Numbered from the whole stretch's first letter, positions 27,618 to 53,267 are shown. The stretch is DNA of 63,716 nt, filler included, from Octopus bimaculoides (GCF_001194135.2; 6 parts of 6 records of this genome joined end to end with filler, not necessarily neighbours in it); one strand, 5' to 3'. The notes: a model not told the origin generated them from the sequence alone. A program made the numbers and translations.

Positions 27618-28793
27618 GTCATATGAATAGAGCCAATGAAAAACTGGATTTGAAATGAATGTAATGTAGGTTATATAAAAAAGCACCCATATTTTTCTAC
27701 TAAATATTTCATCTCTCATGGAAGAAATGTCAAATTGTGACTTCCATTAATACCATCAGATACAAGCATATTGTTATTATTCAAGTGATGTTATTTCCAA
27801 GCAAGTCTTGGTGAAATGTAATGCTTGATAAAGTTGTTATTTACGAAATTTTTATTTACAAAATTTCCAAGTGTTTCTTATGAAAATTTCATAAATTCTA
27901 AGTTAATATGTGTGCATTAAATAGCTATCTTTATGAATTAACATGCAATTAAATGATATATTTCATTGATGGAAAGTTGATAAATTCCAAATAGAAAGCA
28001 AAGAAGATCATCAAACATTTTTGCAACAAAAAAAGTAAGAAAATCAAAAAATTATAAACTTTTTTGCCATCAAAACATTGATAATGAAAGTAATATGATT
28101 TTGTTTTATAATTTTACTAGTTACAGATAGTGGCCTGTGGCCATGGTGTAGAACAATCATTATTAATGATAAATCTTACAGCGTTAGACTATTTCTTGTC
28201 TGAATGAGGTAAAAAAATAACAATATTAGCAACTCTGTTGAAGTAGGCATAGCTTTATGTCAGAAGGGCATAACTGATGAAATTTACTCAAGTATATTAC
28301 GCATATTAATTTTATTGGTGTTAAAGTGATGAAAGGCAAAGGTAGACCTGACAGGATTTTAGCATCAGGTCAATAAGGCACTGAATAGATTAACTTACAC
28401 TAATTAATCTCTGCACTATCAGTTTTAGCTTTAATGCATTTTCTATAATACATTGTAGTATAAGTAATTTTATAATAATGAAACTAAAATAGTTACTCTT
28501 GTAGTAAACTAGTCAGTAACAAAGGAGGCTGATAAAACAAGAAAAAATTACCATGTTCTTAACACTTTAATAGGTACAGATTTAGATTTTGAAACTCAAG
28601 TAATTATTGCACTATTCTGTTTGCAGTAAGATTTCAGACTCATACAGTAACTTAAACATACATGCATGCACACACATCTGCATACATCATACATCTTTAG
28701 ATCAAAGCATTCATAAAAATGGTTGTATGAGAAATAATAATTAGTGAGTGCAAGCCAAGTGGGAACTGAACTCACATAATTTTTTTGTTCCAG

Positions 28794-48109: not shown

Positions 48110-48198
48110 TTTTATATGTGTGTGTATATGATAGACTGCATGCAGAGTTGTTCAATACCAGGTTTATCAAGAGGATGAAGAGGTGGGTTTCTGTTTTT

Positions 48199-48421
48199 TT
48201 ATCTTAGCTTGACATAAGTTTCACTATCATCTTCTATGGCTGCTGAAATTTCTGGATCTAGATTCAAGCATTCATAATGTTCTTCAGAGTTTTGCTGTTG
48301 GAAATGTAATCCTTGTCCAGGTGCATTGATATGAATTGAGTTGGTCTTTTGCATGGAGGAGGAAGTGACTTGAGGTTCTGACATATTACCTTTGCCTTTG
48401 TTGTTTCCAAGCATCTTAGAC
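48199..48421 (-). CDS. Terminal coding exon: cytoplasmic tail of a single-pass membrane protein with two YxxL motifs
   Basis: Acceptor ctattgcag|G (phase 2); (R)SKMLGNNKGKGNMSEPQVTSSSMQKTNSIHINAPGQGLHFQQQNSEEHYECLNLDPEISAAIEDDSETYVKLR*; phase matches the upstream TM exon. Confidence 0.75.
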
Positions 48422-48531
48422 CTGCAATAGACATGTACAAGTATATGTAAACACACATACATACATACATACATACATACATACATACATACATACATAC
48501 GTATATAAACACACACACACACACACATATA

Positions 48532-48783
48532 TTGGGTTGGTGCATAATTATTGCGGCTTTTTTCAACAAATTTTATTTAGCAAAAACAATAAGAATATTT
48601 AACAAAAACGTCTTTAAATGATGGTCTGACCGTCTGCCAAGCGAATGGGAAGCAGTAATTGAAGAAGATGATGAATATGCTCTGGAATAATCATTTAAAG
48701 ATGTTTTTGTTACATGTTGTTGTTGTTGATTTGTTGAATTAAATTCATTGAAAAAAAGCCACAATAATTATGCACCAACTCAC
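48532..48783 (+). mobile_element. Internally deleted mariner element (MITE-like), 252 bp
   Basis: About 32-bp TIRs TTGGGTTGGTGCATAATTATTGCGGCTTTTTT / AAAAAAAGCCACAATAATTATGCACCAACTCAC, TA on both flanks; internal DRLPSEWEAVIEEDDEY resembles the mariner transposase C-terminus (LxxRWxxVIxxxGEY). Confidence 0.88.
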
Positions 48784-48814
<31 letters not shown>

Positions 48815-49215
48815 GTGTATGTTTGTTTGTATGTATGTATGGATTGTGTGTTTGTATGTATGTATGTCCACACTGTCTTTCAAATTATCAACGGTGCGAA
48901 ATTTTAAAAATTTTATTTAAAAACTATTATTGGAATTCAACTAAATTTTCACAGAATGTTGGCAACAGCTATATGCAAGAGGTGTGTTAAAAGTGTGAAG
49001 TTCTGTAAAACAACACAGAAACCACAACCATTTATCCAATTTACATAAACTTTCCCTGTTTCAAATTATTAGCGAGGTGTGATTAAAACTCGTGTAAACA
49101 GGAAAATACCGACTTAATTGTTTGATGTACACACTGGAATGAACACATACAGTCATAAACATGGAAGAAATAGAAATAAACACACAAACAGCATTCAAAA
49201 ATGATTGATGAGCTG

Positions 49216-49548
49216 GTTAGTAAGGGATGCATGAGCCTGTGTTTCAAATAAGTTGGAAAAGGCACAAGTCCATGGAACATGCTAGTTTCTGGATCTCCTC
49301 TGATTTCATACCATAAGATACATCCACTATTGCCTGCCATAGGTCATCCTTGCTCTTAAATTGGTGTCCTTTCTTGTAAGCGCATGGCATTAGAATACTC
49401 CACAAGTTTCCTATTGGGTTTCAGTCAGAGGAACAGGTAGGCCACTTTATCTTTTGAGGTCCACCAAAGCCTAATTGTTGCAGACACTCTGTAGTTTTTT
49501 TTACTGAGTGTGAGAATGTAGTATCTTGCATGAAAATTATGGTTGTCT
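49216..49548 (-). pseudogene. Tc1-family transposase C-terminal fragment
   Basis: IFMQDTTFSHSVKKTTECLQQLG...KWPTCSSD*NPIGNLWSIL...FKSKDDLWQAI..EEIQKLACSM, i.e. degenerate FMQDNAPxH and WPxxSPDLNPIENLW motifs. Confidence 0.85.
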
Positions 49549-49962
49549 GGAAGGGTGGTGTGAGAGAGCTGCATTAAGGAATGGGTATAGAAAAGGTAGA
49601 GAGAAGGTAAGGGTAGGGTGATGTGTAAGTGGGTATTAGTTTTGGTAGTAAAAATGGAGGTGGAATGAAAAATATAAGTCAAGTTGCTATAAACAGACAT
49701 GTGTGATAGGTTAGTGATAATTAGGAAAAGAAAGAAAGAATGTATATCTGTGAATATGTATGCACACATACGTACCCACACATATATATATTTACATATA
49801 CCGACATACAAATCCATACTTATATAAAATACCTATACATATACTCATACATACTCACATGTACCCGTTTGCATGCTTATATATGTATACACACATATAT
49901 ATACATATATATATACATACACATACTCATACATACATGTATCCGTATGTATATGTATGGTC

Positions 49963-49996
<34 letters not shown>

Positions 49997-50002
49997 GTAT
50001 GG

Positions 50003-50042
<40 letters not shown>

Positions 50043-51367
50043 NNNNNNNNNNNNNNNNNNNNNNNNNNNNNNNNNNNNNNNNNNNNNNNNNNNNNNNNNN
50101 NNNNNNNNNNNNNNNNNNNNNNNNNNNNNNNNNNNNNNNNNNNNNNNNNNNNNNNNNNNNNNNNNNNNNNNNNNNNNNNNNNNNNNNNNNNNNNNNNNNN
50201 NNNNNNNNNNNNNNNNNNNNNNNNNNNNNNNNNNNNNNNNNNNNNNNNNNNNNNNNNNNNNNNNNNNNNNNNNNNNNNNNNNNNNNNNNNNNNNNNNNNN
50301 NNNNNNNNNNNNNNNNNNNNNNNNNNNNNNNNNNNNNNNNNNNNNNNNNNNNNNNNNNNNNNNNNNNNNNNNNNNNNNNNNNNNNNNNNNNNNNNNNNNN
50401 NNNNNNNNNNNNNNNNNNNNNNNNNNNNNNNNNNNNNNNNNNNNNNNNNNNNNNNNNNNNNNNNNNNNNNNNNNNNNNNNNNNNNNNNNNNNNNNNNNNN
50501 NNNNNNNNNNNNNNNNNNNNNNNNNNNNNNNNNNNNNNNNNNNNNNNNNNNNNNNNNNNNNNNNNNNNNNNNNNNNNNNNNNNNNNNNNNNNNNNNNNNN
50601 NNNNNNNNNNNNNNNNNNNNNNNNNNNNNNNNNNNNNNNNNNNNNNNNNNNNNNNNNNNNNNNNNNNNNNNNNNNNNNNNNNNNNNNNNNNNNNNNNNNN
50701 NNNNNNNNNNNNNNNNNNNNNNNNNNNNNNNNNNNNNNNNNNNNNNNNNNNNNNNNNNNNNNNNNNNNNNNNNNNNNNNNNNNNNNNNNNNNNNNNNNNN
50801 NNNNNNNNNNNNNNNNNNNNNNNNNNNNNNNNNNNNNNNNNNNNNNNNNNNNNATATATATATTTATTTATTTATTTATTTATTTATGTGTTTCAGCCAA
50901 GTGGCTGCGGTCAAAAATGGAGAAGCAAGACAAGTAAAAAGCAACAGCGTGAGGACATAGCACATGCAAAGTATTAATAAGACGCTCATATATAGTAAGA
51001 GAGAGAGAGGGGGGGGAGACATACATACATATATGAACATAAAGATATCTATTTTCCTAGACATCAGTATAGATATGTATGTCTCTCTCACCCTCTCTCT
51101 CTATACACACAAGCACATACACACGCACATATATAGATATATGTATGTATCTCCATACATATATACATATGAGCACACACTCACATACACACACACATGC
51201 ATACATATACACACACTTTGATAGCGTCCTATTTGCAATTTCTAAACAAACACCCACACAAACAACTAGAAACACATATACGCACACAGATATACACACG
51301 TATACACACCTATAACTACAAGAAGGAAATGAAATGAGAGTAAAGATTGACAATATACGAGTATTAC

Positions 51368-51419
51368 CTGACAAGAAGGACTAACAGCAATAATATGATG
51401 ACTGAAAGGAGGCCTATAA
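51368..51419 (-). CDS. Transmembrane-helix exon (52 nt, phase 1 to phase 2)
   Basis: tttttcttctttag|TTATAGGCCTCC...CTTGTCAG|gtaata; (V)IGLLSVIILLLLVLLV(R). Confidence 0.8.
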
Positions 51420-51928
51420 CTAAAGAAGAAAAACATAAAAATAATCAAACAATATTTTATGTATATTTAAATGGCAGCTGATATAATTAATGTAATAATA
51501 ATTAAGGAAAGAAAGTTATCATCATTGAAAATTACTAATGTAATGAAAAGGAAATTCATTAACTTTGATAATAGCTGTGAAAATCAAGGGAGACAATTCC
51601 TGGATGGAAATTGATTAANNNNNNNNNNNNNNNNNNNNNNNNNNNNNNNNNNNNNNNNNNNNNNNNNNNNNNNNNNNNNNNNNNNNNNNNNNNNNNNNNN
51701 NNNNNNNNNNNNNNNNNNNNNNNNNNNNNNNNNNNNNNNNNNNNNNNNNNNNNNNNNNNNNNNNNNNNNNNNNNNNNNNNNNNNNNNNNNNNNNNNNNNN
51801 NNNNNNNNNNNNNNNNNNNNNNNNNNNNNNNNNNNNNNNNNNNNNNNNNNNNNNNNNNNNNNNNNNNNNNNNNNNNNNNNNNNNNNNNNNNNNNNNNNNN
51901 NNNNNNNNNNNNNNNNNNNNNNNNNNNG

Positions 51929-52046
51929 AGCAAGATGAAATAAAGCGTTTTGCTCAAGAACACAATGCACAGCAGCCAGTCTGGGAATTGAAACTACAAT
52001 CTTGTGATTGTGAGTGCAACACCCTAACCCCTAGCCCACGCACTCT
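51929..52046 (-). mobile_element. SINE family C-like head
   Basis: Reverse complement GGGCTAGGGGTTAGGGTGTTGCACTC..GTTTCAATTCCCAGAC..GTGTTCTTGAGCAAAACGCTT..CTTGCTC. Confidence 0.7.
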
Positions 52047-52906
52047 CCCTACTGCATGAAGGTACCATTCAGTTTCTTGAAACAATTTCAGTTTTGAAGT
52101 TGTTGCTGTTCTTCTTGATACGGATTATCGTTAATACAAATGATTTCTCTTTCCCTCCTGATTGTAAGTTGAACTCTTTACTTCCTGTACTATGACACAG
52201 TACAATAAGGAAATGTATAAACCTTGTTTATATTCATTTCGAGGGAAGTGAAGAAATCTTTAATGTAAGGGCAGATAACTCTAATCCCTTCTTCAATCAT
52301 TCATTTCTCTTCTATCACAGAATCACTACAACATTGGTCTTTTGACTTGGAAAATCTTCAATATGATTTTCAGAGTTAATTAAATAAATATTTAGGTGTG
52401 GAGAAGTTATTATTTTAAGTTTGTTAGCCCCACTTAACTCTCTGTCTTTCATCCAGACATTCTCGATGCAGTTATTAAAGTGACAGACATGAAATATCTT
52501 TCACTAATTTCTCCATTATTTTCAAAATCAATTAAAACAAAGATAGAGTATTTGATTAGAAATATAATCACAAACGAGTTAAATTAATTCAGACATTCTT
52601 GGTGCTGTTATTAAACAGTCGATTAAATTCAGAGTTAAGCTTTGACCAAAAAGGGACACTCCTACCCAATCATGACTGAATGGGACACCCATATTTTCAG
52701 CCCTTGAAATTAAGAGGGTACCCTTCCAATCATACCCAGAGAATAATTACAAAGCATTGGTTTTACTGACTGTCCCAGGACTAGGGAACAAGACACATGC
52801 CAAAGGTGTCAAGAAATGGGACTGAACTCAAAACCTTGTGATTGTGAAATGATAAAGTTTACAAAGACAAATTATGAGATGATATATGAAGAAAAATAAT
52901 AATTAC

Positions 52907-52954
52907 CTATTTCCATGACGAGAATTGTTTCATCAGAATTGGAATTAATTTTCT
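52907..52954 (-). CDS. Extracellular juxtamembrane/stalk exon (48 nt, phase 1 to phase 1)
   Basis: ttttctttattttttag|AGAAAATT...GAAATAG|gtaatt; xKINSNSDETILVMEI; phase matches the TM exon. Confidence 0.72.
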   Translation of the reverse strand, partial: RKLIPILMKQFSSWK

Positions 52955-53005
52955 CTAAAAAATAAAGAAAATTAAAAATCAACAAAAATCTCTCTAATAA
53001 TAACA

Positions 53006-53087
<82 letters not shown>

Positions 53088-53267
53088 CAAAAAAATATGT
53101 ATAAAACACCCATCAAGACCCCTCCCCCCTATTGTAAAATCATGTTTGAGAGGCATCAGCTGGTATCCATAATGAACAAACCATAACGGAATGGGACTCA
53201 GATTTTCACCCCTTGAAATTAAGTGTGTACCCTTCCAATCATACTCAGAGAATAATTACAAAGTTTC

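Follow-up and report, generated by a model that had tools for sequence, protein, structure and literature searches.

A three-exon tyrosine-motif cassette of an Octopus-restricted receptor-like family and its possible duplication without an ectodomain

What do three small exons on the minus strand of a stretch of Octopus bimaculoides DNA encode: a signaling receptor, a part of one, or the remains of one? The stretch (63,716 nucleotides, filler included, made of six parts of the genome GCF_001194135.2 joined end to end; hereafter the window) had been read in an initial annotation as holding a cryptic single-pass receptor of immune or phagocytic type, with a cytoplasmic tail resembling an ITAM (immunoreceptor tyrosine-based activation motif). 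We analyzed the piece of the window that carries these exons (48110-53267 of the joined stretch), which has a G+C content of 32% and contains many microsatellites and repeats that resemble short interspersed nuclear elements (SINEs). Judged by homology, the three exons appear to be the 3' cassette (last stalk mini-exon, transmembrane (TM) exon and tail exon) of a gene from a type I membrane glycoprotein family restricted to Octopus. We tentatively prefer the further reading that the window copy is a partial, "headless" duplicate of a gene like LOC106880589, with a tail whose tyrosine motifs would serve for docking or for sorting.

The cassette is laid out as follows, in window coordinates.

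52954-52907, minus strand, 48 nt: exon 1, probable last stalk mini-exon, phase 1-1, reading xKINSNSDETILVMEI
51420-52906, minus strand: intron 1, with an assembly gap at 51619-51927 and SINE-like repeats
51419-51368, minus strand, 52 nt: exon 2, predicted transmembrane helix, phase 1-2, (V)IGLLSVIILLLLVLLV(R)
48422-51367, minus strand: intron 2, with a gap at 50043-50853, microsatellites, a Tc1/mariner relic and a MITE-like (miniature inverted-repeat transposable element) inverted repeat
48421-48199, minus strand, 223 nt including TAA: coding part of exon 3, phase 2 to stop, predicted cytoplasmic tail of 73-74 residues
48110-48198, minus strand: 3' untranslated region (UTR) with a putative in-frame relic of a C-terminus, KNRNPPLHPLDKPGIEQLCMQSIIYTHI and a stop, cut by the piece edge

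A pyrimidine tract and AG stand before each exon (...ttttttag/ before exon 1, ...ttctttag/ before exon 2 and ...ctattgcag/ before exon 3), and GTAAT follows the first two (donors G/gtaatt and AG/gtaata). The annotated start codon, ATG, lies in exon 1 at 52916-52914 (minus strand), and the TAA is at 48201-48199. The spliced 323 nt form a single open frame, KINSNSDETILVMEI-V-IGLLSVIILLLLVLLV-R-SKMLGNNKGKGNMSEPQVTSSSMQKTNSIHINAPGQGLHFQQQNSEEHYECLNLDPEISAAIEDDSETYVKLR-stop. Coordinates, splice sites and interlocking phases are those that the initial annotation had given, and the sole open frame matches the peptide that it wrote, including SKML...NSEEHYECL, the interval of 16 residues and the terminal YVKLR.

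The TM-like exon 2 has a mean Kyte-Doolittle value of 3.5 over 17 residues. The piece holds one AG/GT-bounded segment of 17 residues whose mean is at least 3.3, as compared with 0.01 per dinucleotide shuffle. The length of the open reading frame (ORF) was also considered as evidence for exon 3 and was rejected, as long ORFs are common in this piece because the microsatellites generate them: the real piece has 12 open stretches of at least 74 codons, and the maximum ORF reaches at least 109 codons in 15% of the shuffles.

The product read from the exon 1 ATG is identical, residue for residue, to a 94-aa UniProt entry of O. bimaculoides, A0A0L8GKS9 (A0A0L8GKS9_OCTBM), and therefore the gene is not cryptic, as had been claimed; UniProt and RefSeq models already join these three exons. 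The RefSeq protein XP_052832940.1 (LOC106871631 isoform X2; UniProt A0A0L8HC62), also of 94 aa, is 97% identical, differing at three residues (H/Y, L/P, K/E). It falls in the same 90% cluster as A0A0L8GKS9 and has the same three-exon structure on CM046626.1, at a locus designated L001. Both are named "uncharacterized protein", with no function attached. An exact look-up of the 94-aa product in a contig index gave no record. A word-indexed protein search returned only the near-identical RefSeq protein; the family described below surfaced with an exhaustive HMMER search (phmmer) that covered 1.84e9 representative proteins.

This search, of the kind proposed with the initial annotation, recovered full-length relatives that possess an ectodomain. 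Residues 1-91 of the window product align with residues 515-609 of P0003 (LOC106880587, 611 aa) with E=7e-13, and tblastn against the piece gave E=8e-10. The TM segment and tail are 40-54% identical to those of family relatives, and the exon 3 tail was matched in P0003, P0005, P0007, P0012, P0015, P0019, P0020 and P0021. A search with P0005, the current RefSeq protein of LOC106880587 (583 aa), found 14 family proteins, each of them "uncharacterized" and each belonging to one of three species, O. bimaculoides, O. sinensis and O. vulgaris. One further match of the HMMER search, a 582-aa metagenome protein from ENA with tandem repeats of ~100 aa (P0004, E=6e-6), was discarded as repeat-inflated noise made up of five weak stretches. 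P0005 reads as a type I glycoprotein: a signal peptide (MLLLPYWSIFLIISPHFIVAQA) is followed by an ectodomain of ~480 residues with many NxS/T sites, a stalk with three 14-residue repeats (EEINFNETVVVNKT, EEINSDKTIVVNKT and DIINCNKTILIMQI), a TM segment (VIGLLAVTILILLVLLI) and a tail that ends in ...QNSEDYEHIDSKPLITASAEDGSVSYVVQ. Compared with the window copy, the LOC106880587/LOC106880589 family thus adds a signal peptide and the ~480-aa ectodomain, in about 11 further exons.

The gene structures agree with the protein alignments. The LOC106880587 locus (L002) has about 14 exons over 31 kb. Each of its stalk repeats is a 42-nt phase 1-1 mini-exon followed by ggtaattatt..., its TM exon has 52 nt (phase 1-2), and its tail exon starts in phase 2. 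The length and phases of the TM exon, both here and at the LOC106880589 locus (L004), are those of window exon 2, and the last three exons follow the same design in the window and in L002, with nearly the same intron flanks. Window exon 1 with its intron flank (ggtaattattatttttcttc) is homologous to the 42-nt stalk mini-exons of LOC106880587 and LOC106880589, e.g. DIINCNKTILIMQI. Because the design is that of L002 down to the intron flanks, exon 1 appears to be a stalk mini-exon and the open frame upstream of its Met to be inherited coding sequence. In the family tail alignment the exon 1 Met and the residues V-I-G are invariant, and the boundary M-x-I-V-I-G is conserved. The 3' end of LOC106880589 runs collinear with the piece (84-91% identical near the TM exon, 74% over the tail exon), and the membrane-proximal tail encoded in the piece is closest to that of the same gene (RSKMLGNNKGKGNMSEPQV versus RFKMLGNKKGKSYMPMPQV). 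The stalk units stand in tandem in the genome, about 700-2300 bp each and with one 42-nt phase 1-1 mini-exon apiece (L004 at 26303, 27049 and 27741; L002 at 33808, 36059 and 36926), and their splice flanks are nearly identical. Such a layout would favor exon gain and loss as well as partial duplication. The proposal of a single-pass receptor therefore stands as regards the family, which is receptor-like in its relatives' signal peptide and ectodomain and in the shared stalk, TM and tail phases; as regards this copy, an ectodomain may not exist.

Two runs of N interrupt the piece, 811 N at 50043-50853 in intron 2 and 309 N at 51619-51927 in intron 1. Both are intronic, so that the reading frame does not depend on them. 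The L004 counterpart of the intron 1 gap (28193-28540) consists of 348 gap-free bases with stops in all frames. Further, the full-length relatives join their stalk, TM and tail segments without extra residues, and a hidden exon in the gaps is therefore not expected.

What kind of ectodomain the relatives possess was approached by sequence and by predicted structure. A Pfam scan of 13 family proteins gave no domain and no family assignment, a search of PDB sequences with the family profile gave 0 hits, and Pfam on the spliced window peptide returned sub-threshold noise only (Protocadherin and DNER_C, E>0.1). In an AlphaFold model of P0003 built from a 13-sequence family alignment, the ectodomain is all-beta, with a predicted local distance difference test score (pLDDT) mostly of 70-88 and a predicted template modeling score (pTM) of 0.58. 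The TM-equivalent segment is helical (pLDDT 74-87), and the tail equivalent has pLDDT <30 and is therefore predicted to be disordered. Foldseek found no global match to this model in the PDB (query-normalized TM-score <=0.15). It did report weak local matches to PLAT/LH2 domains (probability 1.0, 110-138 columns, E of 0.017-0.09); these beta-sandwiches, as in lipoprotein lipase, pancreatic lipase and lipoxygenases, are the best local structural likeness for the relatives' ectodomain, not for the window, and are without a sequence signal there. Nothing thus links the family to the immune or phagocytic role first suggested: Ig, EGF and lectin domains are absent, and neither Pfam nor the PDB sequences gave a match.

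If it is expressed and translated from the family-invariant Met of exon 1, the window gene would give a 94-residue protein with three residues outside the membrane, a signal-anchor helix and a disordered acidic tail. By the positive-inside rule, the flanks of the helix (MEI- before it, RSKMLGNNKGK after it) would place the N-terminus outside and the tail in the cytosol. The tyrosines in EEHYECL and SETYVKL could then be phosphorylated by Src- or Syk-type kinases and dock SH2 domains, and the same sequences, unphosphorylated, could be YxxPhi (Y-x-x-bulky hydrophobic) sorting signals for AP-2. A headless copy might in this way act as a small adaptor or as a decoy for the full-length receptors.

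How well these tyrosines are conserved bears directly on such a role. The two motifs in the window are the following.

48265-48288, minus strand: first tyrosine motif (site 1), SEEHYECL, Tyr codon 48276-48274
48202-48234, minus strand: second tyrosine motif (site 2), EDDSETYVKLR, the present C-terminus, Tyr codon 48216-48214

They may be compared with the tails of relatives, among them that of a third family copy at L001, whose tail exon (about 1380-1610) ends 8.4 kb upstream of exon 1 at that locus and has 76% protein identity to the LOC106880587 tail.

Window: site 1 QQNSEEHYECL; site 2 SETYVKLR-stop
P0005: site 1 QNSEDYEHI; site 2 SVSYVVQ-stop
Upstream copy in L001: site 1 QNSEDCYEDI; site 2 SYVMQ-stop
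P0019: site 1 QNPEDIYANT; site 2 AVYEDLH-stop
P0015: site 1 IAEYCLM; site 2 PIYEELT-stop
P0012 and P0020: site 1 NEDTYCTI
P0021: site 1 LDVYENI; site 2 DLYAMPE
P0011: site 1 GGPYENQ

Both tyrosine positions, with their acidic surroundings, are kept at tail identities of 35-55%, and the conservation on which the initial annotation had staked its reading is thus seen where tails are intact, both in paralogues and in other species of Octopus. The window tail has two YxxL/I motifs, YECL and YVKL. In tail shuffling, both tyrosines fall within YxxL/I with P=0.0125, and within YxxL/I in an acidic context with P=1.2e-4 (post hoc tests in each case). A hemITAM has a single YxxL after an acidic cluster (DEDG type) and acts in a dimeric receptor; SEEHYECL has two acidic residues at -3 and -2 and Glu at +1, and its relatives read SED(C)YE.I and PEDIYANT. 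Other family tails carry additional YxN and YxxP motifs, and because of these a general phosphotyrosine-docking tail seems favored over a Syk-specific one. The two window motifs are separated by 16 residues (NLDPEISAAIEDDSET), outside the interval of 6-12 residues that defines an ITAM (PMC6994640).

The same motifs admit an alternative that we consider possible but doubtful, namely that the tyrosines are not phosphotyrosine-docking sites but YxxPhi signals for endocytic or lysosomal sorting by the mu subunits of AP-2 and AP-1, the family then being one of cycling or uptake receptors. YECL and YVKL both fit the predicted YxxPhi signal, 8 of 10 intact tails have L, I or M as the +3 residue of site 1, and several tails (the window, P0019 and P0015) end in Y-x-x-L-x-COOH, which resembles C-terminal sorting signals. 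Gln at +3 of site 2 in P0005 and Thr at +3 of site 1 in P0019 do not fit, however, and the strongly acidic context is more typical of kinase substrates, as YxN and YxxP in the other tails are of SH2 ligands. Sorting and docking are not mutually exclusive, and the reading that we prefer leaves room for both.

The present tail also seems to be shorter than its ancestor. Read on in frame, the 85 nt that follow the TAA give KNRNPPLHPLDKPGIEQLCMQSIIYTHI and a stop (ending ...PLDKPGIEQLCMQSIIYTHI), and this relic aligns with the in-frame C-terminus of P0021, from O. vulgaris (...PPQTIDNLNNPNIEELYTQPIKYICR). The BLASTP alignment of the window with P0021 begins in the stalk, passes through the stop and extends to the end (32% identity, 145 aa, E=9e-6). 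Because the relic aligns with a coding end, the ancestral tail was probably about 29 residues longer, with a third Tyr motif (IEELYxQPI) in which the window has Cys; the YVKLR end would be a truncation, and the site 2 Tyr would not have been C-terminal in the ancestor. The post-stop module also follows the stops of L001, L002, L004 and L003 (an O. sinensis locus), and is out of frame in L002, L004, L003 and the upstream L001 copy. When the window is compared with that last copy, the module seems better conserved at the DNA level than the coding sequence (CDS). The ratio of nonsynonymous to synonymous substitution rates (Ka/Ks) was too noisy for use on its 15 codons. Its conservation could reflect the region of a poly(A) signal (TATAAA), or read-through or editing of the TAA. 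A mini-intron that would join the tail to the module was tried and rejected: with the available GT...AG pairs, the introns would measure 35-49 nt and the frame would be wrong.

L001 offers the closest comparison for the rate at which the cassette changes. It is collinear with the piece and not identical to it, with these differences.

Introns: 137/2035 mismatches, 6.7%
Exon 1: 4/42 mismatches (9.5%) and a 6-nt indel, all upstream of the ATG
Exon 2: 0/52, 0%, flanks identical too
Exon 3 CDS: 3/223, 1.35%, all nonsynonymous
3' UTR: 1/89, 1.1%

With introns that diverge by 6.7%, the chromosome copy appears to be a paralogue or a divergent haplotype of the window copy rather than the same sequence.

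Several observations weigh against our reading of the window copy as a headless duplicate with a working tail; some concern the tail and its translation, and others the DNA upstream. With regard to the former, the +3 Leu or Ile is missing at either site in some relatives (YVVQ and YVMQ at site 2, YANT at site 1). The window and its L001 twin differ by 3 nonsynonymous and 0 synonymous changes, the Ka/Ks of the window tail is 0.79-0.87 versus L002 and the upstream L001 copy and 0.97-1.21 versus L004 (the upstream L001 copy versus L002 gives 0.29), and the tail shows no sign of protein-level purifying selection. Tails are easily lost in this family: that of the upstream L001 copy is cut short by a TAA where its counterpart has the Gln codon of SMQKT, and the tail exon of LOC106880589 (L004 33808-34040) has a stop after PGQE, beyond which lies a decayed remnant of both tyrosine motifs, with Tyr1 changed to Cys and a second stop. 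The identity between the window and L001 extends into the intron flanks of exon 2 and into the UTR, and gene conversion could therefore explain the similarity of exons 2-3. Finally, exon 1 contains an out-of-frame ATG (52934-52932, minus strand) 18 nt 5' of the annotated one. It opens an 8-codon upstream ORF (MKQFSSWK and a stop) that overlaps the main ATG, the context of the latter being the better of the two (G at -3, G at +4).

Some of this would be expected of a decaying fragment, that is, the product of a recent 3' partial duplication that is untranslated or unselected, its ORF open because it is young and its tyrosine motifs inherited. Ka/Ks values of about 0.8-1.2 versus every relative, the purely nonsynonymous differences from the twin, the premature stops of sister copies and a third ancestral Tyr that is now a Cys beyond the stop all point in this direction. 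A headless homologue was not found outside Octopus, and a literature search on the LOC identifiers found no paper. We nevertheless hold decay to be rather unlikely. Exons 2 and 3 and the UTR together differ from L001 at 4/364 positions versus 137/2035 in the introns, an approximately 6-fold lower divergence (Fisher p=1.5e-6) that argues for constraint or homogenization of the parts found in mature mRNA. Splice sites and ORF are intact in both the window and L001, RefSeq lists isoforms for LOC106871631, and headless models occur in three species with the same Met.

As for the DNA upstream, the piece ends 313 nt above exon 1, with no ectodomain exon within it, and its end falls inside a repeat that follows stalk exons in the family; of the 8.4 kb that separate the upstream tail exon from exon 1 in L001, 3.3 kb are N. 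These cut-off points leave space for a full-length receptor whose ectodomain exons lie farther upstream, or for one alternative 3' end of a large gene, the 94-aa models then being truncated. Exon 1, with its good acceptor and open phase-1 frame, could follow on any phase 1-1 stalk exon farther upstream; genes of the family may reach a great length (the span of LOC115217841 is 134 kb), and L001 has two tail cassettes 8-14 kb apart. We judge this alternative unlikely. The 10 kb upstream at L001, searched with 18 family proteins (E<=1), gave no ectodomain exon in readable DNA, whereas L002 has 5-6 stalk or ectodomain exons within the same distance. In L003, the gap-free locus of a tail-only O. 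sinensis model, coding again begins with a stalk exon that is bounded by an acceptor and has inherited its open frame, and neither the 10 kb upstream nor the gene span of 13.6 kb (23 kb upstream of the tail exon) gave an ectodomain exon. In RefSeq and in the 2015 annotation alike the protein begins with MEI, and exon 1 before the ATG diverges between the window and L001 like intron sequence. A (TAA)30 microsatellite (52995-53084) lies 40 nt upstream of the exon 1 acceptor; translated in the exon 1 frame, it gives a poly-Leu ORF that has an ATG at 53156, which keeps the upstream frame open and is probably meaningless.

The partial duplication that we tentatively prefer would not be an isolated event. 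A tail profile found two more tail-only models, O. sinensis LOC115217851 (115 aa), which starts MGT-VIGIL... at the same family-invariant Met, and O. vulgaris P0021 (162 aa). With tail-only models in O. bimaculoides, O. sinensis and O. vulgaris, headless copies appear to be a recurrent genomic feature. They may be independent genes, alternative 3' cassettes of very large genes, or fragments.

The piece holds a number of other elements. Intron 2 contains, at 49230-49560 (minus strand), the decayed C-terminus of a Tc1/mariner-type transposase (…KIKWPTCSSD, stop, NPIGNLWSILM…), with a match to Pfam DDE_3 (E=0.022) that is below the curated cutoff. Directly upstream of the exon 3 acceptor, between (ACAT)n and (TATG)n microsatellites, lies the MITE-like inverted repeat (48503-48595 and 48720-48812), with 93-nt arms that are 75% complementary. 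A palindromic, hairpin-forming stretch at 50983-51116 of the same intron gave sub-threshold Rfam matches to unrelated plant and animal miRNA families, and matches to mir-297, mir-466 and similar Rfam families fell on TG/TA microsatellites, all far below the gathering score. A SINE-like pair (52687-52754 and 53196-53263) is 91% identical over 68 nt, and a further copy with a tRNA-like head lies at about 51950-52060; ARAGORN called no tRNA on these repeats, and the same element follows stalk mini-exons in L004. At the twin locus, the annotated first coding exon (MFMTVCVHS…) of a 147-aa LRAT/PLAAT-domain gene lies within intron 2 on the same strand, at L001 14128, and has a counterpart in the window at about 49061-49198 (minus strand). 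The main exon of that gene (Pfam LRAT, E=5.6e-30; L001 22029-22520) is 6.4 kb downstream of the tail exon and outside the piece.

It remains to place the cassette among known signaling systems. A canonical ITAM or hemITAM tail to which Syk or Shark would bind through their tandem SH2 domains, in the manner of Draper, Fc-receptor gamma or CLEC-2, is very improbable, because the two YxxL motifs with upstream acidic residues, and a machinery made plausible by the ITAM-Syk-ERK axis of molluscs (oyster CgIgR, PMC6994640) and by the Syk-like gene and SHARK of invertebrates (PMC10253181), have to be set against a spacing of 16 rather than 6-12, a YxxL/I consensus that the relatives do not keep, a site 2 Tyr that was probably not C-terminal in the ancestor, and the lack of homology to ITAM-bearing proteins or of an Ig, EGF or C-type lectin ectodomain in the family. 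The ITAM-like tail of the initial annotation is accordingly not borne out. What the window product shares with ITAM receptors and adaptors (Ig-alpha/beta, FcR-gamma, DAP12, Draper, oyster CgIgR PMC6994640) is a single pass, a predicted disordered tail and two YxxL in acidic context; it differs from them in spacing, in the unconserved consensus and in sequence. The charged TM residue of the DAP12/FcR-gamma type is absent from the window TM, and the family ectodomain, unlike those of ITAM receptors, is without Ig or EGF domains. Nor is there a resemblance to the Draper/MEGF10 type, as the 13 scanned family proteins gave no EGF or EMI Pfam hit and the window tail has no NPxY.

LAT, NTAL, PAG, SIT and SCIMP are transmembrane adaptors whose ectodomains are minimal. 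With translation from MEI, the window product would resemble them: about 3 of its residues would be extracellular, and a single TM helix would lead to a tail with tyrosine motifs. The relatives' tails also carry YxN and YxxP. It differs in having no juxtamembrane CxxC or near-membrane Cys (VRSKMLG), only two tyrosines and no homology to these proteins, and it would arise by truncation of a receptor gene, not from a dedicated adaptor family. A bolder proposal, which we regard as improbable, is that the family cassette has been copied repeatedly without its ectodomain (LOC106871631, the window copy, LOC115217851 and the O. vulgaris model) to give LAT/DAP12-like mini-adaptors or decoys, or alternative 3' cassettes, that tune the tyrosine-kinase signaling of the full-length receptors. 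If true, octopuses would have arrived independently at the receptor-plus-adaptor logic that vertebrate immunoreceptors use.

Should the headless copies be dead, the locus would be a small case of partial gene duplication and decay. The window gene alone is small, already annotated and uncharacterized, and its main value lies in the undescribed family to which it leads: about 14 Octopus-restricted, putative single-pass glycoproteins with a novel, predicted all-beta ectodomain, a stalk built by mini-exon duplication and a fast-evolving tail with many tyrosine motifs. The taxon-restricted genes of cephalopods are largely unexplored and, to our knowledge, these animals lack most vertebrate-type immunoreceptors. 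If the tails are true targets of kinases and SH2 domains, the family would be a candidate for a lineage-specific signaling receptor system in cephalopods.

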